Shown here piece by piece: positions 1 through 36,021 of a stretch of DNA of 64,000 bases. The stretch is from positions 11,222,001 through 11,286,000 of the forward strand of contig OU015567.1 in NCBI GenBank assembly GCA_907165135.1. The letters are read 5' to 3'. The notes beneath the pieces are model-generated. The model was given only the letters and a program-made list of their open reading frames with translations, did no database searches and was not told the DNA's origin. Position numbers and translations under genes: made by a program. The DNA is from Oikopleura dioica. Lineage: Eukaryota; Animalia; Chordata. The first letter of the stretch is position 1, and every line of letters starts with the position of its first letter.

Positions 1-764
1 TTGTTTGGGCGATGTCGAGTCCTATTGTATTGTTTTAGGGAAATAATTGAAATAAAAGTTAAAAATTTGTAGTTTTGGTATTCTGATGTCTGCTATGATC
101 TCTTATCGCGCGCCTCGATTTTTATTTCGGCGCCCACTGGGAGGTTTTCTTCGTTGATTTCATGTTTTTGTTTTACAATTTGGCGCTATCTCTGCCTGAG
201 CTCTGTCACAAAAAGATATATGATAACATAAAATGCAAGAGTTTTCTACCTTTGACTCGAACAGACATTAACAGAAAATTGGAAGCAGTCCAATTATATA
301 ATTGATAAACCTGCAAGAAGAATTCCCTTTTTGTCAAAATTGTTAGGCCTTTTATGAGATAACAAGTAATTCAACGTTTTTTTTTTTAACATCTTGAATA
401 TATTAGCAGTCACGAAATTTGAAACAGTTGTATTTTTTCTATGAAGGCAGGTATAATGTGAAGTTGACTGCTTGTAATCGTTGGGAAAGAAGTTGATCAT
501 TTTCAATTGAAGATATGTCTATTATAAAGGGTTATTGTAGTCTTTTTTGAGGTTTTTTTTAATAAAAATTTTTCTTACGTTAAATTATGCAGCATTGTCT
601 TTTCAATAACACTTGAAGAATAATTTGTAGAAACTGTGGTGAGTCGGGCAGTGCTAGAAAATGGTTATTATTTTTTTTTTTGTGTTAAGTTAAGTTTAGG
701 ATTGCCAAAGTTGACCTTTCATGATTTCATAAGTTTAGTTTACCTTATAATGAATTGCTGGAAA

Positions 765-1775
765 TTAGAAACTCTCGTCGGATGGTGATTCGTCGTCTAA
801 GTCTAGGTCTTGAGCAGTAGTCAGTTCTTTGGCAATTGACTCCAGGGCAGTGTACATTTGCTGGGCAGATGGCTTTTGTTTCTTCTTGTCAAATTTGGGT
901 AAAAACATGTAGAGAAGGATGATACTGATTAAAATAAACAAGAGAACTCCTGTTATTCCGTAGTTCACGAGAGGGCTGATCAGTCGAATCAGGAAGCAGA
1001 ATATTCCAATGCGCATCGCCGTATTTTGAAACAGGGAGACGACACAGTTAAACAGGCTCGCCATAATGTTGCGCAGGCATCTAGCGGCTCGTTCTGAATC
1101 GCGAGAGTAGAGTGAGCAGGCGAGTTCGACGACTGTGGCCAACTTGTCTTGAAAGAATTCCTTCACTGATGCAGCGCTGTCCGGGGGTGACCTGTACAGT
1201 TCTCTTGCTGTATTGAATGGCAGAGTGATCCAAAATAGGAAGAACAATTTGATTTTCTTGATCACCGATTTGCTGCCATTGTTTTTTTCTGTTGAGTCGT
1301 TGCTTACTATTTCTTCTATTTTACCAGCGTCTTTGTCTAGGCGCTTCTTTTGACGGTTGATTTCAGCTGCGAAGGCCTTGCTGTATCCTGATAAGAAAAT
1401 TAAACGGGGAGTCTCTCAACAATCCAAGAAAAAATTTATCTTCGGAAGTTATTTTATCTGTAATCAAAAATTACCTTTATCAGCCGGGGATAAATGGGAT
1501 CCATCTGATTTGACCAAACCGCACGGAGTCTGATGGACACAGAAGGCGCAAGGAGTAAAAGGGGCTAAATTATTTTGTCCCCGTATTCAAGAAGAAACAG
1601 AATGAATACCTGGACATGTTTGCTGAGTGGCTGTCTTTGTCGTTGATTTTTTCATTTTGACTTGTTCTGCTTTTGATTTCTCTGCAAAATTTGTAAATAT
1701 GCTAAAAAAATTGTTTTCCGGCTGGTGTGGGAAGCTGAAATGAGTGTAGAGTGAGCGTGATAATAGTGGGAACAA
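765..1775 (-). CDS. Hypothetical multi-exon protein with a hydrophobic (TM-like) segment and acidic C-terminus
   Basis: ORF 765-1265 has GITGVLLFILISIILLYMFL and an acidic tail. Probable upstream exons lie near 1320-1390, 1475-1560 and 1587-1775. No recognisable family. Confidence 0.4.
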
Positions 1776-2125
1776 CAGCTGCAGGAATGATTTTTCAGGA
1801 GCGGAATGAAATAATCTGAGCCCGTCGCAGACGATCCTAACTTAAATTGATCATTCGTGACTTTATGAATGGCAAATGAACTTTAATCGAGTGAAAATTT
1901 CATCCTCGCGCTCGGAAATAAACAATCCTGGAAATATACAGTGCTGTTATAAAAATTTAAACTTTCGCTGCTGTTAGCAAAATATCTTTGGTGGATAAAA
2001 ATTGAGGTTTCTATTATATTTGATTTATTTTTTTGTTTTGATTAGCTTTTTTCATTAAATTATCAAGTCGGCCATTCCCTTTAACAACTATTCTTTTCAA
2101 GTTTTTTTTTGTATCTTATATTTTC

Positions 2126-2140
2126 GCACGCGGAGCGTGC
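2126..2140 (+). promoter_or_regulatory. Dispersed hairpin motif GCACGC-GGA-GCGTGC, copy 1 (+ orientation)
   Basis: Exact 15-mer, perfect 6-bp stem with GGA loop; T-rich box about 12 nt upstream. Confidence 0.85.
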
Positions 2141-2363
2141 CCTCTGGACGAAAATGCTTTTGGAATCTGTTGTCTTCTATGTCTTCACATTTACATATCG
2201 GCTCTGTGACGGCTTCTTTCCTAAGTTTTCTGTTAATCTTTTCTTTTTGGCCATATCAATCGCCGAATCATGGTCTTATCATTTATTGACAAAAATGAGC
2301 GAAGTAGGAAGTCGCTTATTTACGTTGTCTGTACTTAGGTTGAAGACTCACTTTGGTAAGCAG

Positions 2364-3028
2364 TAAACTTCGAATCAAATATGCTTCGAGTGGAATACAT
2401 TCATTCTTAGCATTCAACTTATTGACTTATGAGACTGTGTCTTCTATGTATTCAGCTTTTAAAATCATCGAAAGGTTGTTTTTTTTACTTTTTATTTTTA
2501 CAAGAGTTAATTCATATTTTCTAGAGAAACTGGTGTTTCTCACCACACTGAGAAGCGCAAAATTTTTTTTTGCGTGTTTCTCAGGCTCTAGAAAATATTT
2601 GTTTATAAAAACGCCACTCTTTATGGATTATTTATTCTCAGAACAAATTCTTTCTAGAGCCTGCGAAGCACACTAAAGAGTGTTTTGCGCTTCTCAGCTT
2701 GGTGAGAAACACCAGTTTGTCTAGAGAATTGCGGGAGTTAGCACATTGCGGTTGGCCCGCGGCACCTCCGTGCTTTCATGGTTACATGGTGTATAATCCT
2801 CCTTTTTTGAAGGCTTCAAGTTGAAGTTTGTTCATCTTTATTCTTCCCTACTTAGCACCTTAAATTGAACATATTCAACTCTGGTCAGTTCGGTCCACTA
2901 CGCCGAATCATGCTCTCATAATTTATTGGAAAAAGATTCAAATCGGACAAAGTCTACTTCCGTTGCTTACATGGGTTGAGTAATCGCTTGGTTAACTTCG
3001 AATCAAATACACTCCGAGTGGACTACAT
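2364..3028 (+). repeat. Two degenerate short arrays of the 16-bp TACACTTCGA-N repeat (about 2364-2398 and 2994-3028)
   Basis: aacttcgaatcaaatatgcttcgagtggaatac and aacttcgaatcaaatacactccgagtggactac match the family seen at 4.1, 5.8, 17.1 and 35.8 kb. Confidence 0.6.
2517..2728. mobile_element. Foldback/MITE-like palindromic element, copy A (~210 bp)
   Basis: About 46-nt terminal inverted repeats (ttttctagagaaactggtgtttctcacc...gagaagcgcaaaa) plus nested inner inverted repeats; related copies at 27.8 and 28.5 kb. Confidence 0.8.
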
Positions 3029-4092
3029 TGATGCTTAATTTCTATTTTGAATTCTCCATGCTTGCACTGACTGTCAACTTTTTTTTGCTAGTTTTTTTGT
3101 CACGGTCTTGGTTTTATTGTGATTTTGCTAGTAAATTTTTCGCAAGAACAGTGAAATAGTTTAGGAAATATTGTGTCTTTGGTTTAGACCTTGGACATCG
3201 AACGAATATTGTCATCTATGCGTCGAGGGATAACAGGTACTCCATGTTAGTTCTCTTGTTCGCTTGATATTTAACTGATTTTATTGATCTATTTCTAGGT
3301 ATCAGGCGTTCCTGGCTAACAAGTCTCAGCCTCATATTCTTAATTTTCATGGCATCTCCTGGTGTCTAATTAAAGGTACAAAATTGTTATTTAGTAAGGC
3401 TCTCGCCCAAAAAAAAAGAATACATAGAACAATCCAGAATGTCCATTGTATTCTTTGCTTTGAGAAAATTTTTGTTATTTGTCCCTGGCTTTATGAGTAT
3501 ATCGGCGTCTCGAGTAATGTCCAGCATATTTTCTATCTTGCTGGTTATTTCGCTTTGTTTGCTTAGTTAACAAGCGAATATAAACAGTCATTATTTTTTT
3601 TTAACGTCGATACAATTGTAACTTTATAAGCTTTCCTGAAGTCCACGTAAATATCCCCATTGGTTCTGCTTCCACTGCTTTCGTATCTTGATATAAAATC
3701 GGAAGCTTGGGCGATGACCTGTTCGACTAAAATAAATTTTTATTCTTTGCAAATATTTAATGTTTACGTTTTGTAATAAGTCTCTTGCTGTCCATGATGA
3801 GAGGATGATCTTGATCTGAATAAATTTGTTGTTATCGTCTTTTAATGAATATCAACGATATGCACAGGTACAATGCGTCAAATTCTCTAACATCAACTAA
3901 ACTGGCATTTCGCGGCGGTCAATAATAACTCAATATGATCTAGAATTTTCCGTTCTCTAAAATTTTAATTTTTTGATCAATTTCTTATTAAATTCTATCT
4001 AAGATTTCTTCTACTAAAAAAGTTGGTTATTCGGCGTTATTGTTTCTCGATGTCAGATTGTAGTCTAAATTTTCCTAGTGATTCTGGATTTT

Positions 4093-4152
4093 ACTTCGAA
4101 TGGAATACACTTCGAATGGAATACACTTCGAATGGAATACACTTCGAATAGA
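4093..4152 (+). repeat. 16-bp tandem repeat (TACACTTCGAATGGAA)x~4
   Basis: Directly visible tandem units. Confidence 0.85.
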
Positions 4153-4559
4153 ATAACAAATTATGCTAATTGCTCATTTTCTTTTGGGCCGACGTAGAAA
4201 ACTAACTATTACGAATTTGTGATTGAATAAAAACATAAGGCTAGAATTTTTCAACCCCTTTCAGAAAATTTGTTTACGTAGAAAAAAGATTCATCCTGTG
4301 GCAAAGATAAGTTTTTAGCTTCTTTCGACCCGAATGATGATTAATGCGTGACAAGGCTTGCTACGATATGTTTGAATCCCATGTTAGTCAAACCTGGTAT
4401 GGCTAGAAAATAATTTGATTTGCTGATAGCAGACATATCTAGGGTTTTTCACCGAAGCGCGCGGGGCTCGAACCCACTTTTCAAGCATCGAGAGAATTGT
4501 GCAATGCCACTGTTTTATCAAAGTTTCGGATTTTATTGAATAAGATTATTAATTATTAT

Positions 4560-5834: not shown

Positions 5835-5884
5835 TACTTCGAACTGAGTACACTTCGAGTGGAGTACACTTCGAGTGGAGTACA
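5835..5884 (+). repeat. 16-bp tandem repeat (TACACTTCGAGTGGAG)x~3
   Basis: Directly visible tandem units. Confidence 0.85.
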
Positions 5885-5929
5885 CCCAAGTTTGAAATCT
5901 GAGTTTTTTAACTTAATTGTGGGTTCTCT

Positions 5930-6671
5930 TTGTCAACTGCAGCCCCTGTTAACCTCAGTCCTTTTTCAGATATTGGTACACTTGACTCTGATATGTCCAG
6001 TGAGTCTCGAAATAATCATCGCGGGTGTGTCGAAATTCCAGCAAACGCTCCCCGTTCTGTCTGTTTCTCGGGTGGAACTTCGAAACGACCATTCGCTATG
6101 GTCGCTTACAAGTTACTTTTACCCTACACTAACCTGGCTGGTGAATTGGTTAGCCACACAAAATATTTCGCGTTCCGCCTGTCGTCATCTGCGCGCAGGT
6201 ATTCTGCTGAAATTTTACCTTAATACTATATCCGTAAGTGGCGATGACGCTGTCTTCACTTTCACCTGCGTTTCTGCGCGCTGTAAGGCGACCGAGATGT
6301 TTTACGGGCCGACATCGATGTTAACTCCGGATAGAGACCAACTTGCTGTGGCGACAAGCGAAGATTTCTTTCAGTTTGTCTCCTTTCACAACCATCGACA
6401 TCAAGGGCAGTCAATTCTACATACATGCTCTGGCAAGCCGCCGCACATTGCTGCGAATGCAATGTTTCGTATCAAACTCCAGGTGAGAATCTGGGTCAAA
6501 TACGTTATTAATTTGTTTTAGACTACGCCGTTCTCACGTCCTCGTCGTATTTCGGAGATCCGCTCGCACATTGACATTGTCCGCGAAGATGTGAACACTG
6601 TTTTCCCAGGCTTTCAGACAGAGAATTCGGATGATGAGCTCATTGACATTGTCCTTGAACGCCTTAAATAG
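5930..6671 (+). CDS. Stand-alone C-C...H-x-C Zn-finger protein resembling the N-terminal DNA-binding region of the neighbouring transposase
   Basis: Three exons with GT-AG introns. FTCVSARCKA...LHTCSG parallels LKCQNCSG...EHKCRG at about 10.29-10.47 kb. No DDE domain. Confidence 0.5.
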
Positions 6672-7203: not shown

Positions 7204-7587
7204 ATGCCCCGTGATGACTCCCGCCTTTTTTGTCGGATTTGTGCATTCTCGATGTGCGAAGAAAACAATCCAAGCATCGCTATAGTTCCCTGTGGACATT
7301 CTCGAATTTGTAAAAGCTGCGCAGACAGAGTCGACAGATGTCCATTTTGCAGGGGCGAAAAGAAAGAATGCATTATCATTCGTGACGAGAATCTTGGAAG
7401 GTCAGGGTCAGTATCTCACTTAACAACAAGCCTTTTCGTACTGGGCATATGCACTGCACGTGCTTATTTGTGCTTGATGCGGACCCTTAATCAAAGAGCA
7501 CAGTTAGTCTGGCAACTTGACCAGCTTCAATATCGTGATATGATGGCTGATTATGAAGGCTCTCGAAATGAAAAAATGCGCCCTTAA
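7204..7587 (+). CDS. Small C3HC4 RING protein (IAP/Mdm2-type RING signature)
   Basis: CRIC...IVPCGHSRICKSCADRVDRCPFCR. Confidence 0.65.
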   Translation: MPRDDSRLFCRICAFSMCEENNPSIAIVPCGHSRICKSCADRVDRCPFCRGEKKECIIIRDENLGRSGSVSHLTTSLFVLGICTARAYLCLMRTLNQRAQLVWQLDQLQYRDMMADYEGSRNEKMRP

Positions 7588-7730: not shown

Positions 7731-8303
7731 ATGTCGTCATCTGTAAAGGCGAAATGTGGCTGCTGTGGCCATCCTTTTGCCCCTCCATTCAGGCAAGAGG
7801 TCGCATCAAACCCCTGCACTCATGTGGCGTGCTTGCAATGCTTTCTCGCCCGTGGAACGCTCTATGGCGGAGGCATAAACCGTGATGTTTTCCTACGCTG
7901 CCCGGTCCCTAAATGCCTCAAAATCGTCGGCTTCAATAATCGCGACTTGGTCTTCATTTCACGAGTCCCATTCAACCCGCTCGACCTGCCACCTGCAAGT
8001 AATCAATTCGACTCCTCCGATGATGACGAAGACAACGATCTAAATGAAGGTGACGGCAGCGATTCTAAAAGAGACGGCAATAAGACCACTGGTGCTCCTG
8101 TCGGCGAAACCGCAGATTCTATGGATTATGATCTCATCGACTCCTACTATGATGGCAAAAACAACGATCTTGATGGAGGTGACGGCGGCGATCCTGAAGG
8201 AAATGACGCCAAACCAGCAGATTCTATGGATCGCGGAAAGATCTCTGGTACCGCTGTCATTTGGATTTCTGATGAGGAGCCCGAAGAAACCAATCGTCAT
8301 TAA
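7731..8303 (+). CDS. RING-like protein with acidic, internally repeated tail
   Basis: CGCC...PCTHVACLQC...CPVPKC, then an Asp/Gly-rich tail with a duplicated ADSMD block. Confidence 0.55.
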   Translation: MSSSVKAKCGCCGHPFAPPFRQEVASNPCTHVACLQCFLARGTLYGGGINRDVFLRCPVPKCLKIVGFNNRDLVFISRVPFNPLDLPPASNQFDSSDDDEDNDLNEGDGSDSKRDGNKTTGAPVGETADSMDYDLIDSYYDGKNNDLDGGDGGDPEGNDAKPADSMDRGKISGTAVIWISDEEPEETNRH

Positions 8304-8599
8304 GTGCATACTTAGCTCACGTACAAACGCTTTCGTCGAAGGTTTTTCGACTTATCTGTCGTTCTTTTTTTGATCCCTTTCCTGTCTCATTTTGGGATCA
8401 CATCAAATTTGCTTCTGTGCATACTTTATGTACCTGACATGCGACTTAATCATTTTTAGGAGAAATTTTCTTGATTTTCCTCTGCCTTTTTTAGGTTGGA
8501 AATGTGTTCGATAACCCACGAGTTCCCGATTGTTATAATTTTGAGATCATCGCTAATCTTGCATCTCCCTTGAACATGCTTTCTGTCAATTTTATGTTT

Positions 8600-8614
8600 G
8601 CACGCGGAGCGTGC
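8600..8614 (+). promoter_or_regulatory. Dispersed hairpin motif, copy 3 (+ orientation)
   Basis: Exact GCACGCGGAGCGTGC, with TTCTGTC 12 nt upstream. Confidence 0.85.
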
Positions 8615-8726
8615 CCTTTTTAATCATTTATTCTCTTTGTATCTAATCATGTTTGATTATCTTTTCTCGGCTTTTCTTTAAAGTAGATAGTTGGCAATCG
8701 AGGGATTTTTCAGTGATCGGATCGGG

Positions 8727-9670
8727 ATGAGCGACATGGAATCGTTTTTGAGTTCGTGTACTGACGCCTCATCTAGCGAGGACGAAGACTCTTCAGGTGA
8801 TGACGATCCGTTCAACGAAAAGGTAGAGATCGAATTTCATTTTCTTTAGTTAATTTTACCTTTTTCTAGTCTACAAATGATCCTTTGCTGTCAGAGATGC
8901 CCAAGACGTTTGTGACCTCGAGCCCGAAGATGACATCTTTGCGATCGGATCCTAAAGATGACGAAAATGAAGGTCTTTTTGGTGGCAATGTAAGTTTATT
9001 CTCTCCTTTGCGATCTCTGTGCTTATCAATTACTTAGCTTTCGCCGATACGGGGTGAGCGAAGCGCTTCCGACTCATTTTCAACTAAAGTCCAAGACCCT
9101 CGCTCTGCGAATAATTCCCAAGCTTGTGATGATAAGGCTACAAATTTAATCGACTCCAAGACGACATTGGCGAAAGATGACATCGGCTTGATGGATGAGG
9201 AGGGTGATTTCGACGACGATCCTTTCAATTCCCTTTTTCCGAATCACAAGAGAAAATCTTTGGGACGTAGAACGACCTCGAAAAAGGTGCAATTGCCCCG
9301 CAATTCTTCGACAAAATCAAAACCTTCCAGTCAAAACATCAAGGCCCATAGTGGCGGACGCACTCGTTGCACTGGCTCTCAATCTGGCCCAAAGCAGACT
9401 AAAAACCTTCAAGATGATTTTGTCAGAAACAGTCAAGAGCTTTTATCTACTCCGCATAATTCGCCATCGTCGTCGCCTCAAATCTCCCGCTCGTCTTCTC
9501 GCAGCTCCTCACCGACAACTTCGAAGGCAACAAAACCAACCACGTCGAAAAAAGTAAAACGAAGACCTGAAAAGTGCCAAGATGAGGCACTGGAGCCTCA
9601 AGTGAAGAGATTGACTAAGCCTTCGAAAAGTGCCGCGAATATGTCGCAGGAGATGACTCTCCAAATCTAG
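8727..9670 (+). CDS. Ser/Asp-rich low-complexity protein, possibly the 5' part of the transposase gene
   Basis: ttttcAG acceptor before ATG 8727; two GT-AG introns join in frame to ORF 9167-9670. The link to 9841 onward needs frameshifts. Confidence 0.4.
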
Positions 9671-9840: not shown

Positions 9841-12800
9841 GGAGTACCAGATCCTGAAAAATTCATCGATCCAAATTCGGAAATGAAAAAGGGTATTCAG
9901 CGTGACACCGGCGATGAACCAATGGTATCGATCCCTTTGTCTGCAAAAAGGAACATTCTTCATACCTACATATCTGGCAATGGGAATCCTTGCTGCATCG
10001 TTGAATATTTTCTTCCAGTGGACGACGGCGATGGTCAAGACCTGCGTGATCAACCTTCTACTTCAACGGCGCCAGAATCTGCCACGCCTTGGACATGCTC
10101 CATTCCAAATGCAAAGAGAAAGATTCTCAAAAAAAACAAAGCTAGGCGGTCAATTCCGTCGGCAGCTCAGACAAGAAAAGTTGTTTATCATATGCAATAC
10201 AATGGTTGCAACAAAAGGTAAATGGCTTGCACGATTTTAAATAACACTTATTCGTTATCTTAGAGGCAATGGTGCTGCGTCTGTCCATCTCAAGTGTCAA
10301 AACTGCTCTGGTCGCCAAACTGTTTATTGCGACGCGTCTTACATCATGCCAACTAAATCTGGCTCTTCATGGATGATAAACCCAGAAAAGGTGCAACTCT
10401 TTTGGCATAACGCGAAGATGGATCCTCCTGGCGACCATACGCGTCTTAGCCCCAAATACGAGCACAAATGCAGAGGTCTAACGAGGCAAAAAATCGCCGA
10501 AATTACATATGAGTCCGGAATTCTGGTATTTTGTGTAGAGTTAATAGTTTCTGAATAATTATCTAGAAAATGGTTGATCAGATGGGACCTACGGTCACTG
10601 CTCAGTCAGTGCGTGATCATATTAAAACTGTACAGGAAACTTACCCCGAATGGACGCCACACTACGAAGTATCACGATACATAAAAAGATGAGAAACCGA
10701 AAACGATTCTACCGGCGACAAATGCGGGAGGAGTTCAAGCATCGTGACGAACGAGTTCCACTCGTCCCGAAGGTTCTTTCGACTCTGAATTATCACAAAA
10801 GACTCGACGGCGAAGGGTTTGCGAATTTACGGTGGCCATGCGTCGTAACCGATAGGTTTCTAATCGGTAAATAAGCTTGTTTTTGTAATTAACCGTTGTT
10901 CTTATTACGCTTTTTAGTCGCAGATTTGCTAATGCTGTCTCGATTACCTCCAGCATCATTCATTAGAATGATGCTGGATGGTACTTTCACCATATCTGGT
11001 GATTTTCGGCAATGCATCACGATCCAGATAGCAATCACTGATGACACTGGAAACACGGATTACAGATTGGTTGCCGCCATTTATCTCCTCAGTAAGAAGA
11101 AGTTGGACTATGCTGCTGCTTTCTATGCATTCTGGCAAGTGTTGACGAGCATTCACGACTCAAGCGTAATTAGCACCGTCTTTGCTCAAACTGACGGTGA
11201 GATGTCATTGTATCTTGGGTAAGGCTAAATTTTTATCTTTGCAGAAGCCATTAATTTTTCCCAATTAAGCGCAGAGAATGGCCTCAAAAAACACAGCGTC
11301 AATGTTCTTTCAACAATCTGCCAAGTCCATCTGGAGCGGGCGCTCTACAGAAACCTCAAGTCCATCATTGGCTTTCAAACTACGCCCGCAGCTGTCCGGA
11401 TCTTCACGTTCATGATGAAAACGATAGTGAGTACCTTTTTGTTTTTTTTACCTAAAATTTTTTGTTAAGCAATTGGTCAGACCGGATCTCATTATGCCGA
11501 GTCTTCTGGGATTATTCGCTCTTGTCCAGAGGTTGCCAAGATATGGACGAAGAATTTCCCGTTTCTTGCGGGATTACTGTCAGCGAGTCATGGGGCAGTA
11601 CAGAGACAGGTTCTGCTACTACAAATTACTCCTGTTGGCGAAGAAAGAGCGATCGTCAGTTTGTTTGTCGACGAATCCGTCGGAGTCGTTAAACAATAGC
11701 TTGAACAGCCAGTTTCGGGCTAAATTCAAGAAGGTAATTTTGATTCTATAGCGACAGCCATACTTATTATCGTGTTTAGCGAAAGGGCAATTTAGACGAG
11801 GACTTGTTGTTGTTATACGAGTTCATGGATGAATCTGGGCTCAATTATTATCAAGGTCATGTCGATAAGCAACGCGAAGATGAAAACGATCAGGCTGCGA
11901 ACCGAGAGGCTTACGTCAGGAAAGTGATGGACCGATGCGAGCAAGAGGAAATATATGAGCGTGGCATGCCCTTTCCGAGAGAATTTTTCATGGACCTCGT
12001 AAATTTAGCGCTTGAGCGTTTTGCGGTAAGAAAGTTGATTTTACGTTTCATTAATTTCTTTTCAGGAGAAAGCGCCCGCGCGTCTCACTGCCATTCTTCG
12101 AAAACGATGGGCACGTAATCGGCTCGAAGAACGCTTAAAAGAAATCGAAGATGGCAAAGTCAAAGCAGCTGAAATGGACCCGGAAACCGAAGAAGATCGT
12201 CTGGCAGATGAAGAAATTGCAGAGAATGATGAGCCATGTGACGTGCCTGTCGGCGCTATTGAAGATGAAATCATGGCTTCTGGCGATGAGGGTGATGATG
12301 GGATAGAGCTGAACGTAACTCGCGCGATCGGATCACTTAAATTACCCACTACGGTACAGCATGAAATGGCTATGGGCGATCTTCTTGAAGGAGCTAGGGC
12401 GCACAGTGGCGCTGCTGGGCCAAGTCGAAACAGCGACGTAGCGAACGCGTCTCCTGTAAACGGAGCCAATGAGACGCAAGGTGATTCGAATGGAACAAAG
12501 GGCATTGGCGCTGTCGAGCACTCAGCTAACATGGTGACAGAACAATCGAATCCAACGACTGTGAACGGAATATGCGACATTGGCACTGTAGAAACCTCAG
12601 CAAACATGGAGACCGAACGTGCAAATCCGGAAGCTGCTAACGACACAAATGGAGACGACCTGCTTCAGCTTGATTATAGCAACCCTTTTGAGTCGGAATC
12701 CGACACCGACATTGAAATGCCACCATCAACCGACGAGGAAGATGACGCAGACGACGGAGAACAATCGGAAGAGGACTCAATCGATTGGGGATTCAATGAC

Positions 12801-23869: not shown

Positions 23870-23884
23870 GCACGCTCCGCGTGC
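23870..23884 (-). promoter_or_regulatory. Dispersed hairpin motif, copy 6 (flipped)
   Basis: GCACGCTCCGCGTGC, then 13 nt, then GACAGAAAA. Confidence 0.85.
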
Positions 23885-24018
23885 GAAAATAAGCAAAGAC
23901 AGAAAATGACCTGACACAGACGATTCGTTCGACTTCCTTGCAATTTATTTCTATATTGAACACACTGACAGCTTGAATCGCGCACCAAAAAATTGACTAG
24001 ACCCAGCTTATTTAGATA

Positions 24019-25337: not shown

Positions 25338-25528
25338 ACACGCATAAGTCATAATTTGGACGCCTTCAAAATGATCTCGCCTGTAATTACTACCTTTGCA
25401 CAGATATTTCATCAAATTATAATCCTCTGCAGAACTTATTTCCATGTTCTGTCTCTGCTCCATTAAAAAGTTCTTTGGCATCTCTCAAAATTATGAGCTA
25501 TAAATCCATAACAAGATAAAAAAAAAGA

Positions 25529-27479
25529 ATGGAAAGACAATTGAGGCGAGCGCACGTGGGGATAAGAGTCATCCCAGCAAGACAAGAAATCATAGATGAC
25601 AACATTTGCGAGTTTCCACTGCAAATTTATCGCCGCGTTCCTCCTTACCAGCATGACGTTGAAATAAAGTCGGGTGAATAATCAGCAAAATGCACTTTGA
25701 AATAATTATCGGATAACCGAGGCGCAAAATTATATTTTCTACTCGTCAATATAATCACGGAAATGACAACATTTACTGACCCCATTAAGCAACTTGAAAT
25801 CATGCTCGAAGAAAGACGAACCGCATTAGAGGTTATGGAAGGTAAGCCATAGATCATTCAGGAAGTAAAGAAATATTTTTAGCGGCGCATGATGAGTGTA
25901 AAACAAAATACGAAAGAAAGCGACGACTCCATAAAATTTTCCTGCAAGACAAAAAAGTTTCCATCATCGGACTCGACAACAAAATACCATCAAAGAGCGA
26001 TAGAGAGAACGACACCATTTCGCACTGGTTTTTTAAACTTGGAATGTGCAAGAAACGTCATTTGATCGAATGGACAATCACGAATGAAACAAGATTGTTC
26101 ATGTATCGATATAACTTACTAACGGAGGAAGGAAAAAAGAAATTTCTCGAGGTAAGGCCCCTTAAAAAGAATAGAAAGCCAATAACATAACACTCAGAAA
26201 GAAACACAAGACATGGGAGAGTTTATCGAAGGCACGATACCAGAAGAAAAACAGGAAACCTTATGCAGATGCTGCGACAAAACGCGTAGAAAAAACAGGC
26301 GCTGGTATACGATGAACTGGGAATCCGCAAATTTACTGGTCGAGGAAAGATGTTGTCATATCGACGATGGAAAAGGAAAAAAATGGCTATACTTATATTA
26401 TGATTGTAAATATATAAAATTGAAAGCGAATAATCGAATAATATAAAGAAGATTGATTTTTTTTTCAATTAAAATAAGAGTGGCATATGTCCCGGAAGAA
26501 TGGATGGAAAGAGTATTGGAGAGTTTCTTTAAAAGGGAAATGAAAAGATGGATCGAAAAACTTTCAAAAACGTACGATCAAATGCTCAATAACGAAACGA
26601 ATCGTCTAGGTAATAAACATATTCAAATTCAATCTTTCGGATTGTTGAGAGCATATCTTTAGTTTATCCTAAAAATTTACTTCTTTAGTGCCTTTGCTTG
26701 ATCAATGCACAATGACAAACACCCGGAGAAATATAGGGCGAACTTCAAATCAGCTGACAATTGAACACCTCGGTGAATTCGGGAAACGATCACTTCCGCC
26801 GTGCATAAAAAATCTGATATACGGCCTAGAAAAGGATAAAAAATTAAAGCACAAGGTAAAAAAATGTTGTTTCAAATCGAAAGGCGAATAGGGACGACTG
26901 AACCTCTGGAGTTTCTTCTACAACAGTGGCCTACCGCTTGAGCAAGCGAAAAGATATTCATTGGAGAAGATGACAAAGAACGTAGAGAGCGAAGGAAGAA
27001 TCAAATATTATATCGAGCATGCCTATGGAAGAAAAAGGCTCAATATGCCAATAAGTAACAGATAATAAAAAAGAAAGAAAAGCCTTAAAAACTTATAAGG
27101 AAATTACACATGCGAAGAAAAAATTGCCAGCGAAGTGCAGTACAGATCCTATCACCATTGTCCATTCAAGGAACGGATTTAATTGGAATAAGTCGATTCC
27201 AGAGGCTAACAAAGGAATACACAAGAACAAAAAAATCCTTAAAAGGAAAAACGATACCTACGCCGTAACTTGCAAAAATGGAAAATGGAAGCCGGAGACA
27301 TCGAAGACATCTGTAATATGCAACTAACAACAACTAGCAAGACCATGTGCAAATTTGTTTTTCGACGCATCCATGCTGGACTTGGCAACGAAGAATTCGT
27401 AGATTACAAATCGCCAACAGAATATTTCGAAGCCAGTATTGCCCTAACAAAAGGCATTCACGATGTTCAATTAAAATAA
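25529..27479 (+). CDS. PRIM2: DNA primase large (Fe-S) subunit, PriL/PRIM2-like, multi-exon
   Basis: FPLQIYRRVPP, DTISHWFFKLGMC...ETRLFMYRY, VAYVP, SLPPCIK...KLKHKGR, NYTC, YHHCPF, TMCKFVF and KSPTEYFEAS match PRIM2 in order. Confidence 0.85.
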
Positions 27480-27691: not shown

Positions 27692-27782
27692 GTATATAGA
27701 ATAAAGACAGAGAATGCAGCAAATAAACCGATTTATTTTCATCCGAAAATATTTAATTGAATGCTGATAGTTTAAATCAACC

Positions 27783-28000
27783 AATTCTCTAGAAAGTGAA
27801 GTGTTTCTCACCTAACTGAGAAGCGCAAAACAATTCTCAGTGTGTTTCTCAGACTCTAGAAAAATATTTGTTTACAGAAACTCAACCCCCTTTGGGCGTA
27901 TCAACTAAAAAAACAAATTTTTTCTAGAACCTGAGAAACAAACCAATTCATGTTTTGCGCTTCTCGGCTTAAGTGAGAAACACCAGTTTCTCTAGAAAAT
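27783..28000. mobile_element. Foldback/MITE-like element, copy B
   Basis: Same terminal and nested inverted repeats as 2517-2728. Confidence 0.8.
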
Positions 28001-28454
28001 TCTTGATGTTCTTTTATGAATACGGATTTTAGTTTCTCTTTATGAAAAATTGATTTCTTCTACAAGCGAAATAAATTCGTATCAAAATAATCCTTATGCA
28101 TCCGCAATTATATAACTTTTTTTTTACTAGTTATGCAAAAAAAAAAGGAAAAAAAAAACAGACGACAATGAGCTCTTTTCAACATAAGCTGCGCAAGTAT
28201 TGCAATAGTGCTCAGCGTCGATAAGATTAGACAGAGAATTTTATTTGCCGCTAAAAAAGCATCGTTAGACACAGCACAAAAATAAGAATGTGTCATTGTT
28301 GAGCGGGAAGCGCCGACTTTGGAGATTACAATGGCAGGGCAGACATGATTTGAGGCAACCTTGTCCCCATCAATCCTCCGCAAGCATCAATCGATTCCTT
28401 AAGAGTTTTTACGCAAAATAGATTACTTGCAAAGTAATAGAAATTTACACAATC

Positions 28455-28662
28455 TTTAAAATAAAAGAAATGATTTTCCCTCCGGGAAACGCATAGAATT
28501 TCCACGCATGCTTCTCAGGCTCATAAAGAATAAATATTAAAATAAATTAAAACCCTTATTGGCAAATAAAAATCAAAACAAATTCTAACTAGAGCATAAG
28601 AAACATAACGAAAATGTTTTGCGCTTCTCGGCTTAAGTGAGAAACACCAGATTTTCTAGAGA
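28455..28662. mobile_element. Foldback/MITE-like element, degenerate copy C
   Basis: Right arm tgttttgcgcttctcggcttaagtgagaaacaccag matches copy B; left arm is decayed. Confidence 0.55.
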
Positions 28663-29592
28663 AGTTTTGTTGTGAAATTGCTAGCAGATCGAATGACTTA
28701 CGAAACTCACACAACAAATTTGCTTTTCTCATCCTGTCCAAGAAGCGCAAAATTTGACAGAGCTCATTACGGCTCTATTTAAATATTCACATAAATCTTA
28801 CTTGTATGGTATCATGCATTTATTTGGTAACCAGACGACTCATGAGTAAACATTCTAAATAAAAAAAAGTAATGTACTTATTGTCTTTCTTATCTTCAGT
28901 CTGATGCATTCTAAAGTAAGCTGTGCAAAACAATAACAGACGTCAGTCAAATCGAAAATAATGATTGAAGCATAAATTCAGGGGCAGTCTAGGTAGAATC
29001 AGTAACTGCTTCTTCTTTGTTTGTATATTGATCGATTGAAAATATTATTTTCCTACCTTGACCGCTTCGTAATTGAATTGAATTGAACGAGATTATTGCT
29101 TAACACCTCAAACTTTCCGTGTAGAAGGTTAATTGCCTTAACCTTGTTCATGACGAGCTTCATCGCCTGGAAACATTCATCTCTATCCATTGCTCTGATT
29201 ATGACCTATAATTCATAAAACTATTGAACAACCAAAAAAAAAAACAAGATTACCCCAGCTCTTTTCAACATTTGACGGAAAACGTCCTTGAGAGAATTCT
29301 CGTTATTCACGAGTTGTTTCGCCAACTCGCTGCTTATCTTCTTCTCGACCTCATTGCTCCCGCCCCTTGAAGATTATGAGTATAGCCCGTTTATAGTTAA
29401 CTTACAAATGATAATTAACCCGAGCGATGAGACGATTCACTCGTCCAATTAATAGTTGGAGACGCCCAAATGGTGGAAGCGCGTTGAGTAAGTCCTCTCG
29501 AGAAAAGTCAGGTTGTTGATTATGCGAACATGACATAGCAACCGAGTCTTAAAAATTAATTTTAAATTATCTAATAGATAAATTTGTAGATG

Positions 29593-29607: not shown

Positions 29608-29861
29608 AAATATATTCATGACAGAAAAAAACCGATATAAGAAGAAGAGTAAATTCATAGCAGATTCTTTTCAACAGAGCAAATCATCTTCGTTGCTTTG
29701 TGAAACTACAAGCAGACGTCTTGAAAACTTGAGAATAACAGAAAAGTATTTAACAGGTCTTCTTTTTCTGGGGGTTAGATTGGGTATTGGTGAACGAAGA
29801 AACGGTAGATTTACTTAAACAAAAACATGTTTAAAGAAATGAACTTCAAGAGAAAAAAAAA

Positions 29862-32800
29862 TTACCCGTCTTTAGAGGGCCCACAATGGTCACTGGAATC
29901 GCTCAAATCAACCTCCTTCGAATCATCTGCTTGTGCGAGGGAAAAGGGAGTAAGAACAAGTGATGAATTCAGTTTTTTGGTTGCGGCGGTCTTGATTGCC
30001 CTTGGTAGATCACAGAGAGGATGCTTTTTATTCGGCCAACGGGTAAGTTCGATGACATTATCGATGTCACTCTTCGCCAAACTGATAAAAGGAGTATTAT
30101 AAACAAAAAGACAGAATAACCTGTGTCCATTCATCAATTGAGCAATATTTTTCACTGCTTCATCGACCGTTAAAAGCTTTGTAGACGCATTTAACAAAAA
30201 CTGACAGTAGAGATCTTTGAAGCTCGGTCCAAAATAACAGGCGATATCAGAGCGAGAATAATACCAACTTGACCGAGCGTGGGACGAAAGTAATGCTAAA
30301 TAAATAAGTACGTGCAAAGAAACAAAAAAAAAAAACTTACTCGCAGTCCTCCCGTTTTTCATATAGGAAGAACTATTTTTCAAGGCAGAAGGAAATTTCA
30401 TAAGCGAACGATCGATAGAACCATCGATATAGCATCCGGGAAGACGAGAGAGTGTGGATAGGGTATCGCGTAAATCGTAGCGATGGCGTTTCGTCATCAA
30501 TGTTTCCATTATGTCGCATGAAGAAAGGGAGTTTGCGGCGAGAGATAATTTTTCCTATGAACAAGTAATAAATAGAGAAAACCTTTTATAACCTGATTGG
30601 AGAAACGCTGTTCGGGAACGACCCTTCCGTAGTTTTCAAACACCATGTTCAACATGAGATCAGGATAACAATCATATAATCTGTCCATTTCAGCGAGCTT
30701 GTCGTCGAGAGAATCCGTCGCATTGAAAATGTTCCCTTCCAAATAACGCGTCGAAGCTTCAAATAAATGGGGTTTCTTGTCTTTCAAACTTGCATGGAAC
30801 ATCGATTCAGAAACAGGTTGCGAATCTACAAGGCCAAATATAAGTAATTTATTTTTTTTTTTTAAATTGCGATAAAAAAAAACCTTTATTGTCCCAGGCA
30901 AGCATATTTATTGTATTGATACATTGACGAACATCAAACTGGCAACGAAGTATTATTGCGCGAAGGCATTCATCGGGTATTGACAACTTCTCCACATAAG
31001 TAATTTTCCTTAAACGACCTAAAAATAATTCGAATTCGAAAATAAATGAGTACGAACCAAAAATCTGTGTCGAATTTAATGCTGGGAAGTGTAGTTCGTA
31101 CATATAACTCCGAAGACTTTTGAATTTAGGAGCGGAGCAATTATTCGCAATAGCAATTATGGGAATATCGGTGAGTTTTACAAGACTAGTAAACTCAGCA
31201 AGGCCACCACGGTCTTCACATCCGCAAATGCCGTCTACTTCATCCATGATCAATATATACTGATCGTTCATCGAGCTGATATTAACATTACTATAAAGAG
31301 GTACTACAGAAAAAAAACTACAGAAAAAATTTGAATCGACATTATAGTACCAAACTGAGAGCTTCGCAGACGACATCACGAATTGATTTTTTTCCGCGGT
31401 CATCGCTAAAAAACGCGTCAGAAAACAGCCGAGAATAAAAGAGCCGCGCATATGCAGAAAATTTTGTCCGTCTTACCTAGCATTAAATTCGATAACGTGA
31501 AAACCAGCTTCAGCCGCAACAACGTGTGCAGTGGAAGTCTTACCAATACCAGGAGGACCAAGTAGAAGAGCACCGCGTAAATGATTGCCAGAAACAACAG
31601 GTTGAAATTTCGATTTTCCGCGGTTCTTTGTTCCTTCCTCGAGGCTTGACTTCCAGTTTTTGAGCCAGGCGAGCAATTTAGCAGCGTTCGAAGACGAATG
31701 ATTTTGCCCAATTATATCTTTTATACGAGTTGGTTTATATTTGTCGACGTAAAGAACAGCGTGATGGTCCGGATCGCAGGATTTAGGCGGAGCTTCCAAT
31801 TGCATGCTAGAGTTTGAATGGAAAGAATTGTCGGCATCAAATCGTTCGGAAAAAGACGGGGAGGATCGTATAAGGTGAAAAAGAGCAGCCTCGTCAATAA
31901 TACTGACTTTTAAACGCTTAGCCTTCTCCAATTTACATTTTCCAGGATTGAGCCCAGCAACCAAATAATGAGTACTTAGAGATAAGAAAGAAGAAACGGT
32001 GCCGCCATGGGAAGTTATCAATGAAGTGAGTTGAGGTCGATTCATGCTATCGCCGTCTCCAGTCAGAACAAAAGTGAATCCAGCTAGACATTTTCGTTTG
32101 CCCTGAGGAATAATCCGAGAGCCAGGATTCCTTGCAAGACCAATACTATGCCATGGATGATTCAACATTTTATTTTCCGGGAGTGAACTCGTGCAGGGGG
32201 CAGCCGCGGAAACATTAGAAATGTCGGCAAGAGCGGGGGAAGCATGAGTTGTAGTCGAATCAATAGCAGCGCAATTTTCCAGACCTGGCGCTTCTGAACC
32301 TTCAGCTTTTTCGTTAGACTCTAACGAAACTGGAGAACGGAGGTCATCGTTGAGAGTAGGACTTGTAGGCCGTGGCGATTGCTCGAAAACGACAGTATCT
32401 TCGTCTAGACAAACGAGATTTCTCGAATCAGTAGAATGGTAGTTTTTTGGACCATACACATCCGAACCTTCAGCTTTTTCGATAGAAGCAGTAGCGTTTT
32501 GAAAACGAGGGTCCTCCTTGACAGAAGCTGAATCGGAGGTTGCACCAGGTGTAGGACTTGCAAGACGAAGCGATTGTTTGAGGACGATAGTATCATCTTC
32601 TAGACTGACAAAATTTCTCGAATGGGTAGCAGTGCAGTTACCAAGAACAGACACATCCGAAGCTTCAGCTTTATCGACTGACACTGAATTAATTGGAGAA
32701 CGAGTGCCTTCGTTGACATATGCAGAATTAGATGATGAACCAAGAGTAGGACTAGCGGGCCGATAAGGTTGGTTGATTACCACAGTATCATCTTCTAGGT

Positions 32801-34002
32801 TGCCTAAATATGATGATTATCAGATTAAAGACAATTCTCGTACCAATTAAATAAGGAGGTTCTTCTGAACCAGAATCAACTGATCTGGCAGACGAGGAGA
32901 TATGAGCAGACGCCAACTTGTTATTTGAACCCGCGTTCGAATCAGTTTTGGAGATGTCAGCATTGATCTTTTGTTCGTTCCGTTTTCCATCGTTATCACG
33001 ATTGGGCGAAATTTGCGGAGAAGTGCTTATAACTGAGCCAATTTCACAGGATCTTCGAGACAAAGAAGCACGAACAGGAATTGACTCATGAGGTATATCG
33101 AATGAACTAGGATCGATTATGCCCGCCAGACGTCCGATCGAAACCCGACATTTTTTTATTTTTTTGTAGAATTCCGTCAACCTCACAATTAGAAGCGCGA
33201 ATTTAAGTAAACCAAATCTAATCAATTTTTTTTCGGCTCTTTTATGAGGTCGATTCAGAGTATTGTCCGACGAACCTCGATCCAGATTCCGGGGACATAT
33301 TCGATCCTAGGGGTGAAGATCTAATAAGGGTGAAAACAATATCTTCGTCGATGACAGCGATTCCATACGCTTCAGCCCGTTTTTCATTGAAGATACCAAA
33401 CGCGTCACCAGCGACGACATAGTTTACATTTTGAGAGAAGGCAGTGGTAACAGTTCCACCAAAAGAAATGATTAAACAGCGTAGCGCGCCTTCGTCCAAT
33501 TTACGACCACTTCCCGAAAGAAGAAAGACCTCACCAAATAGACAATTGGGAACGCCTTCGATGTGGTCGCGAAAGGCATCTTCATAGAAATTTTCCTTGA
33601 AAACAGCATTCATGTCGATGAGAGAAATAGGAGGCAACACAACATCGAAACTCATTCCAGGGGCGTTATTCGGGATGATAGAGTTACCCACAGGAATATC
33701 ATCGTAACTAACTTCTTTGTGGACAATGAAGTTGGAATCAGCAAGGTTAGGTCGACGCGAATCATTGTCTTGAGTAGTAGACACCGGAAAAATGAATCCA
33801 AGTGAACGAAGATCAGAAGAAAATAGAGCAGGGGGCGAAGTATTCTCTTTATCAGGAACGCCATCGACAGAAGCAGAGGAAGTTGATTGCTTTGAAAAGC
33901 TGGAATTAAAGTTGCAAATAACAGAATAAAAAAACCAGCCCTTTCCTTTGAGGAATCAGTTACAGATATAGAGATAAAACCAAGGTCAATTAAGCTCTTC
34001 AT
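29862..34002 (-). CDS. RFC1: Replication factor C large subunit (RFC1)-like clamp loader with two BRCT domains; multi-exon, 3' end uncertain
   Basis: BRCT-1 EGVPNCLFGEVFLLSG, BRCT-2 QGKRKCLAGFTFVLTG...IDEAALFHLIR, YVDKYKPT, Walker A GPPGIGKT, Walker B LIMDEVDG, DRGG, IPIIAIAN and DVRQCIN. Confidence 0.9.
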
Positions 34003-34260: not shown

Positions 34261-34572
34261 ATGTCCAGCGCAGAAACAAGTGGCAATAATGTCGTCAAGA
34301 GCGGCTTCAAGCGCCACAGAAAGGTGCTGAAGGATAACATTCTTGGCATCACCAAAGCCGACATCCGTAGGCTTGCCCGACGAGGCGGGATTACGCGCAT
34401 GTCGGCCGAGGTAAACGACCTGGCCAGGGAAATTATAAGGTCCGACCTTATGGACCTCGTCAGTGACGCCATCACCTACACCACACACGCCAACAGAAAG
34501 ACAATCGTAGCCCTTGACGTTGTCTATGCACTCAAGAGACAAGGCCGTCAACTCTACGGATTTGGGGGATAA
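34261..34572 (+). CDS. H4: Strongly diverged intronless histone H4 variant (103 aa)
   Basis: [25 protein letters not shown] and [18 protein letters not shown]; same length as canonical H4. Confidence 0.95.
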
Positions 34573-34596
34573 AATCCTACCAAAGTCTTCAAAACA

Positions 34597-34612
34597 GGCC
34601 CTTTTAAGGGCC
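34597..34612 (+). promoter_or_regulatory. Replication-dependent histone mRNA 3' stem-loop
   Basis: GGCCCT-TTTA-AGGGCC 24 nt after the H4 stop, flanked by AAAACA and ACAAA; matches the metazoan consensus. Confidence 0.9.
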
Positions 34613-35171
34613 ACAAATACAATAAAGTTGTCTTTACAGCACAGAAGAAAGAATGAAAGAAATAAATAACAAAAATACTCTAGAAAAATGAAAGAATTCA
34701 CAATATATAAATAGTCGTAAATGATAAAATGACTCACCCGACGTGGACCAATGAGAGCGCACAAGCGCCGGTGCACCAGGAGCGAGAAAAATCCAATTTT
34801 ACTAGCTTCGCCCAATAGATCTAGAGCATAAGTGAAGGAAAATTAGAGAATGCCTTTCAACGCTTCTGCCAAAGCGAAATTAGGCAAAAATTAGAGAATA
34901 TCCGTCACTTATGAACTAAATCGAATCGAGCACCCATTTTTGACCTTAGTATAAAACGAAAGAACGCATTTATTAGCGAAGGAGTAAAAATTTTTTCGAC
35001 AACGCTTCTGCCAAAGCAAGGTCGACATAAAAATACAAGAATAAGAGTACTCTATCGCTAATAATCGCATCTTCCACAAAAAATTTTGCTCGATTATTTT
35101 ATCACAACTAACTTCTGCCAAAGTAATTTGAGATAGAATATTCGAGCTGAGTACAATATAAAACGATTACA

Positions 35172-35373: not shown

Positions 35374-35393
35374 GTTGAAAAAGTTCGGGAGGG

Positions 35394-35408
35394 GCGCGCT
35401 CCGCGCGC
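35394..35408 (-). promoter_or_regulatory. Hairpin motif variant with compensatory stem change, GCGCGC-TCC-GCGCGC
   Basis: The A-T pair of the stem is replaced by G-C at both paired positions; the loop is unchanged. Confidence 0.7.
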
Positions 35409-35480
35409 GTATATATTAAGACGCACAAATAGAGGGTATTAGAATTAGGGAAGGCGGAGCAGGAAGTTGAGCAGGCCGGC

Positions 35481-35690
35481 TGGAGGAAGTGGCACGCTTC
35501 GCGTGAACCCTGTTGTAAGTGGAGGAATTGGCACGCTTCGCGTGAACCCTGTCGCTAGAAATGGCACGCTTCGCGTGAACCCTGTCGCTGGAATTGGCAC
35601 GCTTCGCGTGAACCCTGTCGCTGGAATCGGCACGCTTCGCGTGAACCCTGTCGCTGGAATTGGCACGCTTCGCGTGAACCCTGTCGTTGG
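35481..35690. repeat. 33-bp tandem array x6, each unit containing GGCACGC-TTC-GCGTG
   Basis: Unit GGAATTGGCACGCTTCGCGTGAACCCTGTCGCT; cores at 35491, 35530, 35563, 35596, 35629 and 35662. Confidence 0.95.
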
Positions 35691-35697
35691 AATTCTT

Positions 35698-35800
35698 GTT
35701 GGAAATGAGTTCGAGGAAGTTGAAAAATTTGTTGGAAATCTGTTCGAAAAAAGTTGGAAAATTTGTTGGAAATCTGTTCGAAAAAGTTGGAAAATTTGTT
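35698..35800. repeat. ~33-bp AT-rich tandem repeat (gttggaaatctgttcgaaaaaagttggaaaattt) x2-3
   Basis: Directly visible. Confidence 0.8.
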
Positions 35801-35832
35801 TAAATTGCGTCCGAGGCCATTTTAGAAAATAG

Positions 35833-36021
35833 TGTATTTGGTTCGAAGTGTACTTGGTTCGAAGTGTACTCAGTTCGAAGCTACTTCGAGTGGAGTACAC
35901 TTCGAACCAGGTATTTTCGAACCAGGTACACTTCGAACCAGATACACTTCGAACCAGGTACACTTCGAACCAGGTACACTTCGAACCAGGTACACTTCGA
36001 ACCAGGTACACTTCGAACCAG
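35833..36021. repeat. 16-bp repeat array: 3 inverted units followed by ~9 forward units (TACACTTCGAACCAGG)
   Basis: gtgtatttggttcgaagtgtacttggttcgaag... then ctacttcgagtggagtacacttcgaaccagg...; largest copy of the family. Confidence 0.95.

Follow-up and report, generated by a model that had tools for sequence, protein, structure and literature searches.

In animals, PCNA and the primase subunits are encoded by single-copy, unlinked genes, and Oikopleura dioica is known for expansions of CDK1 and cyclin genes. Pack-MULEs and other gene-capturing Mutator-like elements of plants are short and non-autonomous, have long terminal inverted repeats and 8-11 bp target duplications, and carry gene fragments. 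Teratorn, which combines piggyBac with a herpesvirus in medaka, as well as Polintons/Mavericks and casposons, are present in many copies with defined ends and carry DNA polymerase, capsid and packaging genes. The plant FHY3/FAR1 proteins, which belong with the domesticated Mutator transposases, are encoded by stand-alone genes and bind the site CACGCGC (PMC6000157). O. dioica has 31 histone variants and lineage-specific histone paralogs (PMC3156773). In the literature searched, no PCNA, primase or RFC1 paralogs, no Mutator elements, no H4 variant of the kind described below and no such cluster are reported from Oikopleura. Here we analyze a stretch of 64,000 nt of the O. dioica genome (the window) in which genes for PCNA, both primase subunits, an RFC1-like protein and an H4 variant lie next to a Mutator-like gene. 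The window covers 11.222-11.286 Mb of chromosome 2 in the Okinawa assembly OKI2018_I69 (GCA_907165135.1, record OU015567.1, 16.16 Mb), its base 1 being record base 11222001; its left edge is open. A first-pass annotation had taken the first 36 kb for a giant transposon or virus-like replicon that carries its own clamp, clamp-loader, primase and histone genes. On balance, we favor reading the block as an ancient, duplicated, operon-like module of host genes with a long-resident Mutator-derived gene, and not as a live giant transposon or provirus.

Two collinear clusters of clamp and primase genes

The gene calls of the assembly served as the first gene map, and Pfam scans were run on individual open reading frame (ORF) pieces, ~70 from the window and 20 from a sister locus (L004) on the same chromosome. 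The central part of the block contains the following features, all on the plus strand.

9883-14393: Mutator-like gene with multiple exons, recognized by its motifs and its collinearity with L004 4447-9900; without Pfam match
14431-15444: PCNA-A, 259 amino acids (aa), six exons, intact (Pfam PCNA_N, splice model)
15749-16731: PCNA-B, 256 aa, six exons, intact (Pfam PCNA_C, splice model)
16767-17659: zinc-finger ORFs (IBR/B-box-like, CPxC), from the ORF map, with weak Pfam matches to IBR and FYVE (E 1e-3)
17770-20160: PriS-like gene, annotated as 577 aa, 3' bound approximate (two Pfam DNA_primase_S matches, solved PriS chains)
20728-21707: probable third, highly divergent PCNA-like gene, part of an annotated 500-aa model (weak profile and hhalign matches)
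21711-25337: ORFs that make up the remainder of the 500-aa model (gene call; without Pfam match)
25526-27479: PriL-like gene, annotated as 247 aa from 25835 (Pfam DNA_primase_lrg_N and DNA_primase_lrg; homology to the sister copy from 25526)

The assembly models fuse neighboring genes: a 1317-aa model joins the Mutator-like gene to PCNA-A (9883-15329), a 276-aa model joins PCNA-B to the zinc-finger ORFs (15749-17659), and a 798-aa 'PCNA' model at the sister locus spans three genes (L004 10001-14186).

As the first-pass annotation had proposed, PCNA-A and PCNA-B are eukaryotic PCNA genes of ~260 aa, and both are intact. Pfam detected PCNA_N in PCNA-A (14431-14637, E 7e-11) and PCNA_C in PCNA-B (16281-16544, E 2.6e-10). 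Splice models joined the exons over GT-AG or GC-AG introns placed by homology, and in PCNA-A these introns sit where the host gene also has them; the junctions of PCNA-B came from a scoring script and are a model, and the profile hidden Markov models (HMMs) of PCNA were used for scoring only. Of the PCNA-A introns (38-70 nt), four are GT-AG and one is GC-AG; the true C-terminus requires the latter, which the assembly model missed. In PCNA-B, all five introns are GT-AG and 39-46 nt long. With a metagenomic PCNA fragment as the query, the canonical O. dioica PCNA was found elsewhere, as a gene for 261 aa in Okinawa (X-specific region) and for 260 aa in Bergen, each alone among unrelated genes. 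Exact spliced alignment of the canonical gene gave exon lengths of 208/110/83/228/157, and the PCNA-A exons measure 208/110/83/228 in both clusters, which corresponds to four intron positions in common with host PCNA. The exon layout of PCNA-B is also closely similar to that of the host gene. Since PCNA-A shares the introns of host PCNA, it is, as judged from its sequence, an intron-bearing duplicate of the host gene made at the DNA level, neither viral nor retro-copied.

The cluster proteins have diverged far from the host clamp. PCNA-A is 35% and PCNA-B 29-31% identical to canonical O. dioica PCNA, the four PCNAs of the two clusters together span 29-36%, and the PCNA-A proteins of the window and the sister cluster share 28% overall. 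Canonical PCNA itself is 78% identical between Okinawa and Bergen, with the same exon structure, a value that illustrates the distance between these O. dioica lineages. Because canonical PCNA lies elsewhere and canonical H4.1 genes have been described (PMC3156773), the clamp and histone genes of the block are extra copies and not the sole orthologs. The third clamp-like gene that had been noticed in the window stands as probable. Its matches follow the order of the PCNA sequence and keep its register (residues 3-83, 126-148 and 205-229), but each is weak (HMM E 0.003-0.04; three hhalign matches at E 0.012-0.5).

The sister cluster was found by a search of the whole library with PCNA-A exon 1, which led to the 798-aa O. 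dioica protein. It lies 4.2 Mb away (OU015567.1, 6.993-7.017 Mb), and the sequence examined ends inside PriL. A homolog search with the fused PCNA model returned only the model itself, the word index being too coarse for these paralogs. The annotated genes of L004 are a 1684-aa gene without Pfam match, a PCNA-PCNA fusion model, a 528-aa gene and a PriL gene; three PCNA-like genes are arranged there in tandem. ORF-by-ORF comparison revealed strict collinearity between window 10256-27443 and L004 4474-23726, a stretch that runs from the Mutator-like Cys/His finger through PriL. Local protein identity was 25-42% for the Mutator-like gene, 28-37% for its C-terminal 'X' domain, 40% for PCNA-A exon 1, 41-57% for PriS (L004 15195-16729) and ~44% for PriL (L004 21416-23726). 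In the same comparison, no counterpart of the ORFs at 21711-25337 was detected in the sister cluster. Further copies had been anticipated for a mobile element, and the block is indeed not single-copy, but the second copy shares only 26-57% protein identity with the first, which indicates that the duplication is ancient.

Both primase genes were identified correctly at first pass. Pfam assigned DNA_primase_S to two ORFs of the PriS-like gene at 18.9-19.7 kb, solved eukaryotic PriS chains matched at E 1e-10, and the catalytic motifs are kept: DIDxTDY, a Cys cluster, SGxRGxHxW and HLxRxPFSxH are all found in the ORF translations. The gene consists of an N-terminal extension (17846-18525) and the primase core (18634-20156). 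The extension had been called clamp-like; it gave one weak hhalign match (E 0.18), which does not establish a clamp fold. The annotated product of the PriL-like gene (25835-27479) carries both the N-terminal and the C-terminal Pfam domains, the piece with the C-terminal domain scoring E 5e-4, and matched solved PriL chains at E 3e-6.

The Mutator-like gene consists of a Cys/His finger (10241-10555), a DDE-like core (10893-11748), an acidic region (12039-13088) and the X domain (13731-14390). No ORF piece of either copy matched Pfam, even at E up to 1, and comparison of the core with solved structures gave no meaningful match. The window copy contains the strings DGTF, TDGE, CQVH and TNPSESLNNSLN, and both copies keep the N-terminal Cys/His finger, DGTF, TDxE, CxVHxERA and TNPxExxNxSLN. 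We take the DGTF/TDxE/CxVH/TNPxExxN set to be the D-D-CxxH-E pattern of Mutator transposases. The earlier assignment to this class is thus supported in part, by motifs conserved in both copies but not by any Pfam match to the ORF pieces. At least one intron position (GT-AG) is also common to both copies. A single-sequence structure model of the X domain had a mean confidence (pLDDT) of 33 and was not used. The stop codon of the X domain is followed by the ATG of PCNA-A after 37 nt in the window and after 98 nt at the sister locus. Just before this ATG, the two copies alike have a polypyrimidine-AG acceptor. The short spacer and the acceptor presumably correspond to the arrangement of downstream genes in O. 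dioica operons, whose co-oriented genes are closely spaced and receive a spliced leader at a trans-splice acceptor. The short distance of 37-98 nt in both copies argues that the Mutator-like gene is not a separate insertion.

Relatives of the block genes were found in two ENA assemblies, one of them from Tara Oceans, in which PCNA-A exon 1 is 85% and the H4-like gene 88% identical to the window. The ratios of nonsynonymous to synonymous substitution (dN/dS) against these Tara-lineage orthologs were 0.06 for PCNA-A exon 1 and 0.12 for the H4-like gene, and ~440 nt of the H4 flanks and the first PCNA-A intron can still be aligned. These values indicate that PCNA-A and the H4-like gene are functional genes under strong purifying selection, seemingly inherited vertically. 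The same two samples contain a third PCNA-A-type gene (contigs L015 and L016), whose identity to each of the Okinawa copies is ~47% and whose first intron lies at the same position. Alignments of PriS and PCNA-A against JGI metagenomes gave no relatives.

A private palindrome and the search for element ends

The first-pass annotation had noticed private DNA motifs in the region. Two features of the noncoding DNA are relevant here, neither of which has a strand.

2106-29628: span of the eight private-element copies in the window (exact palindrome counts)
35485-36042: repeat block at the right border of the region first delimited (repeat analysis)

The motif was confirmed. The 15-nt palindrome GCACGCGGAGCGTGC occurs in eight exact copies at 2.1-29.6 kb, where 0.02 are expected, with cores at 2126, 5639 and 8600 on the plus strand and at 15466, 21296, 23870, 27677 and 29593 on the minus strand. 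Another copy, the ninth, is located 950 nt beyond the left edge of the window, and two exact copies are present in the sister cluster. No exact copy was found at 36-64 kb or in three control O. dioica loci of 12-21 kb each. The four left copies point one way and the five right copies the other, and in the window the two groups lie on either side of the Mutator-like gene. The palindrome is part of an element of ~36 nt, TTTCTGTC-N-TAT-N-GCACGCGGAGCGTGCC, in which TTTCTGTC is followed by a short A/T-rich spacer with an invariant TAT, the palindrome and then C. No similarity aligned beyond this unit, and no Rfam family matched it. Copies are located 21 nt past the PCNA-A stop, in a probable intron and directly upstream of two start codons. 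The intronic copy is in the third clamp-like gene, in an apparent intron of ~100 nt (21242-21335), which is unusually long, and it suggests that the element can insert into noncoding DNA. We considered the element as a histone-type 3'-end signal (a stem-loop followed by the purine-rich GACAGAAA), as a U7-like small RNA and as a terminal inverted repeat. The core CACGCGG differs by one base from the FHY3/FAR1 site CACGCGC.

The repeat block at the right border begins with a 33-bp tandem array (35485-35694) that contains six variant palindromes with two mismatches each, followed by a second 33-bp array (35696-35800) and by inverted 16-bp TTCGA repeats (35819-36042). Tandem repeats of the 16-bp TTCGA type were also observed at 4093-4155, 5836-5885 and 17096-17160 and at 1140-1187 of a further locus (L002), often a few hundred bases from the palindromic element; among the loci examined, they were found in this region only. 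Foldback repeats resembling miniature inverted-repeat transposable elements are present at 2516-2740, 27773-28009 and 28614-28673, with arms of 55-90 nt that are 77-84% complementary, and their sub-threshold Rfam matches to microRNA precursors were taken as generic hairpin matches. The AT skew goes from negative values at 1-8 kb through near zero at 8-12 kb to positive values at 12-36 kb, which persist across the minus-strand RFC1-like gene; it changes sign near 9-12 kb, where the palindrome orientation also switches.

The boundaries predicted for a transposon did not appear. The inverted matches consist of the 36-nt element, the foldbacks at 2.5 and 27.8 kb and the 16-bp repeats, and none of them bounds the block in both clusters. 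No target-site duplication of 8-11 bp was seen by eye at the best inverted pair (8576-8632 and 15448-15504), which is a weak test without defined ends. Domains of polymerases, helicases, capsids or packaging proteins were absent from the window and L004 ORF pieces scanned with Pfam, and integrase domains from the window pieces. The interpretation of the whole as a giant transposon or virus-like replicon therefore holds only in part: the extra clamp and H4 copies, the second cluster and the common motif agree with it, but the lack of ends, the ancient divergence, the introns, the signs of selection and the lack of a viral hallmark do not.

An old family of large Mutator-derived transposons that captured intron-bearing host replication genes in the manner of Pack-MULEs, was selected at the level of the element and survives as immobile or rarely mobile copies would explain why a Mutator-like gene leads both blocks with its catalytic motifs kept despite ~60% divergence. 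The introns of the host-derived cargo are expected of capture at the DNA level, and the third PCNA-A-type paralog in the same Tara samples, the restriction of the palindrome to the two clusters relative to control DNA, its opposite orientation on the two sides of the Mutator-like gene and the array of variant palindromes at the right edge all fit. However, neither a pair of terminal inverted repeats nor a target-site duplication bounds the block, and the ~36-nt motif is found at different relative places in the two clusters. Young copies were not seen either: exact-match look-ups of the H4-like protein (103 aa) and of a 190-aa protein encoded in the left part of the block gave one genomic place each, and the purifying selection between lineages and the alignable flanks suggest vertical descent. 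Furthermore, known Mutator elements are only a few kb long, 1.4-10 kb in arthropods (PMC13359780), and the cargo of Pack-MULEs is fragmentary. We consider such a family unlikely, though not far-fetched.

Giant viruses encode PCNA, RFC, primase and sometimes histones, and the mimiviral replication machinery is reportedly the subject of a published treatment (PMC8097291). An endogenous replicon of giant-virus-like or herpes-like origin, encoding its own clamp, loader, primase and histone, could thus account for the clustering of the genes, with the common intergenic motif comparable to the promoter or terminator signals of viruses. Against this origin, the genes contain multiple tiny spliceosomal introns, PCNA-A has four intron positions in common with host PCNA, and the RFC1-like, PriS and PriL proteins match animal or eukaryotic proteins best. 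The scanned ORFs encode no capsid, DNA polymerase, helicase, packaging ATPase or integrase domain, alignments of PriS and the Mutator-like pieces against IMG/VR yielded no relatives, and the G+C content of the region is like that of its flanks. A viral origin is therefore extremely improbable.

The RFC1-like gene, the H4 variant and flanking features

The right part of the block and the DNA to the left of the Mutator-like gene contain the following genes.

6098-6671, plus strand: small gene annotated as 164 aa (gene call; without Pfam match)
7204-7587, plus strand: RING-finger ORF (Pfam zf-C3HC4_3, E 5.5e-9)
7731-8303, plus strand: Cys-rich and acidic 190-aa protein, single exon (annotated; without Pfam match)
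8727-9670, plus strand: Ser/Lys-rich 282-aa protein (gene call; without Pfam match)
28943-29536, minus strand: 145-aa gene (gene call, ORF pieces; without Pfam match)
29750-34002, minus strand: RFC1-like gene, 1153 aa (Pfam, match to human RFC1)
34261-34633, plus strand: H4 variant gene, 103 aa (coding sequence 34261-34572), with a histone 3' stem-loop at 34592-34633 (H4 identity, Rfam RF00032)

The identification of RFC1 was borne out by a full domain set. Pfam detected two BRCT domains, AAA, AAA_lid_RFC1 and the RFC1 C-terminal domain at 29.9-34.0 kb, human RFC1 of solved structure matched at E 5e-19, and the Walker motifs GPPGIGKT and DEVD are visible in the ORF translation. The second BRCT match is unusual, and a coding repeat of 195 nt is present in two to three copies at 32255-32745. 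By a hand count on the alignment, the AAA+ core is ~45% identical to that of human RFC1. At this level of identity, it is possible that the genome has no other RFC1 and that the gene is not a paralog. The block genes had been described as far more diverged than their neighbors. With 387 bits to human SMARCA5, the neighboring ISWI is well conserved, and the description is apt for the PCNAs and H4 but not clearly for the RFC1-like gene.

The H4 gene was likewise recognized correctly. Pfam found the histone fold at 34.2-34.6 kb, and the protein is 63% identical to canonical H4, with R3, K5 and K8 replaced and K12, K16 and K20 kept. A 3' stem-loop 20 nt after the stop codon matched Rfam RF00032 with 36.7 bits, above the gathering score. 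This canonical histone stem-loop indicates a histone gene of the replication-dependent type. The purine-rich ACAGAAGAAAGAA downstream of the stem-loop (34573-34680) could be a histone downstream element, and it resembles the GACAGAAA flank of the private palindrome. Identity with the published testis variant H4t was rejected, as H4t differs from H4.1 at three residues only (PMC3156773). Two other loci were set aside: one (L003) carries an ordinary divergent H4 with uninformative neighbors, and the other (ENA contig L005, P0124) is unrelated.

Among the genes on the left, the 164-aa gene has a Cys/His finger that resembles the N-terminal finger of the Mutator-like protein in the sister cluster (window 6204-6431 against L004 4447-4713, ORF-level E 0.002). 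The sister cluster also has a RING gene (L004 20152-20424). Outside the block, a tRNA gene is located at 50448-50521 on the plus strand (Rfam, 67.6 bits).

With all genes in view, the block could be taken for ordinary housekeeping replication genes in a fast-evolving genome that are neighbors by chance, the transposase-like gene being an unrelated insertion. The proteins of O. dioica do evolve fast, as the 78% identity of canonical PCNA between Okinawa and Bergen illustrates, and the RFC1-like gene could be the only RFC1. For PCNA and H4, however, this explanation is contradicted by the canonical genes elsewhere (for H4, PMC3156773). In addition, a locus 4.2 Mb away repeats this gene order, Mutator-like gene included, and the spacing between the X-domain stop and the PCNA-A start leaves no room for an independent insertion in either copy. 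Chance assembly of housekeeping genes is thus highly improbable.

The proposed host module and its relation to known systems

In the reading that we favor, copies of host replication genes with their introns (two to three PCNA genes, PriS and PriL) would have been gathered in the Oikopleura lineage into a tight, co-oriented block directly downstream of a Mutator-like DDE gene. One or more ancient DNA-level duplications would then have copied the whole block, and purifying selection would have kept both copies. The Mutator-like gene and the clamp and primase paralogs are probably co-transcribed. The PCNA paralogs probably form an alternative sliding clamp, possibly hetero-oligomeric, that works with the linked primase pair; for the clamp of the window copy, the RFC1-like loader and an S-phase H4 variant are possible further partners. 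Such a set would serve specialized DNA synthesis in an animal with many cell-cycle variants. The Mutator-derived protein keeps its catalytic motifs and a Cys/His finger of DNA-binding type. It would most likely act on the CACGCG-type palindromes of both clusters, either as a regulator, by analogy with plant FHY3/FAR1, which bind CACGCGC, or as a site-specific DNA-cutting factor.

Several observations weigh against the host module. The catalytic motif set of the Mutator-like gene appears complete, which is compatible with an active and with a domesticated transposase alike. The palindrome positions fit no single role. In the Tara-lineage contigs (L011 and L012), the alignment with the window breaks off precisely where PCNA-A begins (window 14428), and the DNA upstream contains TTCGA-type repeats and an internal duplication but no X-domain exon, so that the link between the X domain and PCNA-A is not universal. 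The L004 sequence stops inside PriL, and the RFC1-like and H4-like genes may not belong to the duplicated unit. Finally, if PriS, PriL and RFC1 are the sole genomic copies, they are housekeeping genes and do not form an alternative set.

We also entertain a more speculative and rather unlikely idea. Appendicularians might possess a family of Mutator-derived modules with captured whole, intron-bearing clamp and primase genes, which would have endured as co-transcribed units over very long periods. The DDE protein would target CACGCG palindromes for DNA synthesis at chosen sites by the primase and clamp of the module, either for selfish replication or as a domesticated form of local synthesis.

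A chordate has thus retained no fewer than two and probably three extra PCNA lineages, all very divergent, together with two or more primase pairs, in collinear clusters under selection. Each cluster is headed by a Mutator-like gene with intact catalytic motifs, and one adjoins an RFC1-like gene and a previously unreported H4 variant with an S-phase-type 3' end. Should the genes form part of a specialized replisome, they would be relevant to the way in which Oikopleura manages its numerous cell-cycle variants. Were the Mutator-like protein to act on the private palindromes, animals would have a counterpart of FHY3/FAR1, or a transposase would be newly linked to dedicated DNA synthesis. In either case, the clusters illustrate block-wise duplication of replication genes.

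Compared with Pack-MULEs, the locus shows the same linkage of a Mutator-type DDE gene to DNA-level copies of host genes with introns, but it comprises several full-length, selected genes over at least 17 kb and has no detectable ends. With Teratorn, Polintons/Mavericks and casposons it shares the association of an integrase or transposase with replication proteins; the polymerase, capsid and packaging genes, defined ends and high copy number of those elements were not found here, and the cargo is host-derived. The similarity to FHY3/FAR1 and other domesticated Mutator transposases lies in a Mutator-derived protein with an N-terminal Cys/His finger that has long been kept, and in CACGCGG as the counterpart of their site. 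Unlike the plant genes, the Oikopleura gene stands first in a duplicated cluster of replication paralogs, and binding of its product to the palindrome is hypothetical. The crenarchaeal PCNA1-2-3 and the eukaryotic 9-1-1 clamp also comprise several distinct PCNA-fold genes, and a hetero-oligomeric ring with a dedicated loader is conceivable for the Oikopleura set, but its members are recent derivatives of animal PCNA with common introns, not orthologs of Rad9, Hus1 or Rad1, and the ring is hypothetical. A further parallel is found within O. dioica itself, whose known paralog sets likewise consist of extra, divergent genes for core chromatin and cell-cycle functions, some of them in small co-expressed clusters.

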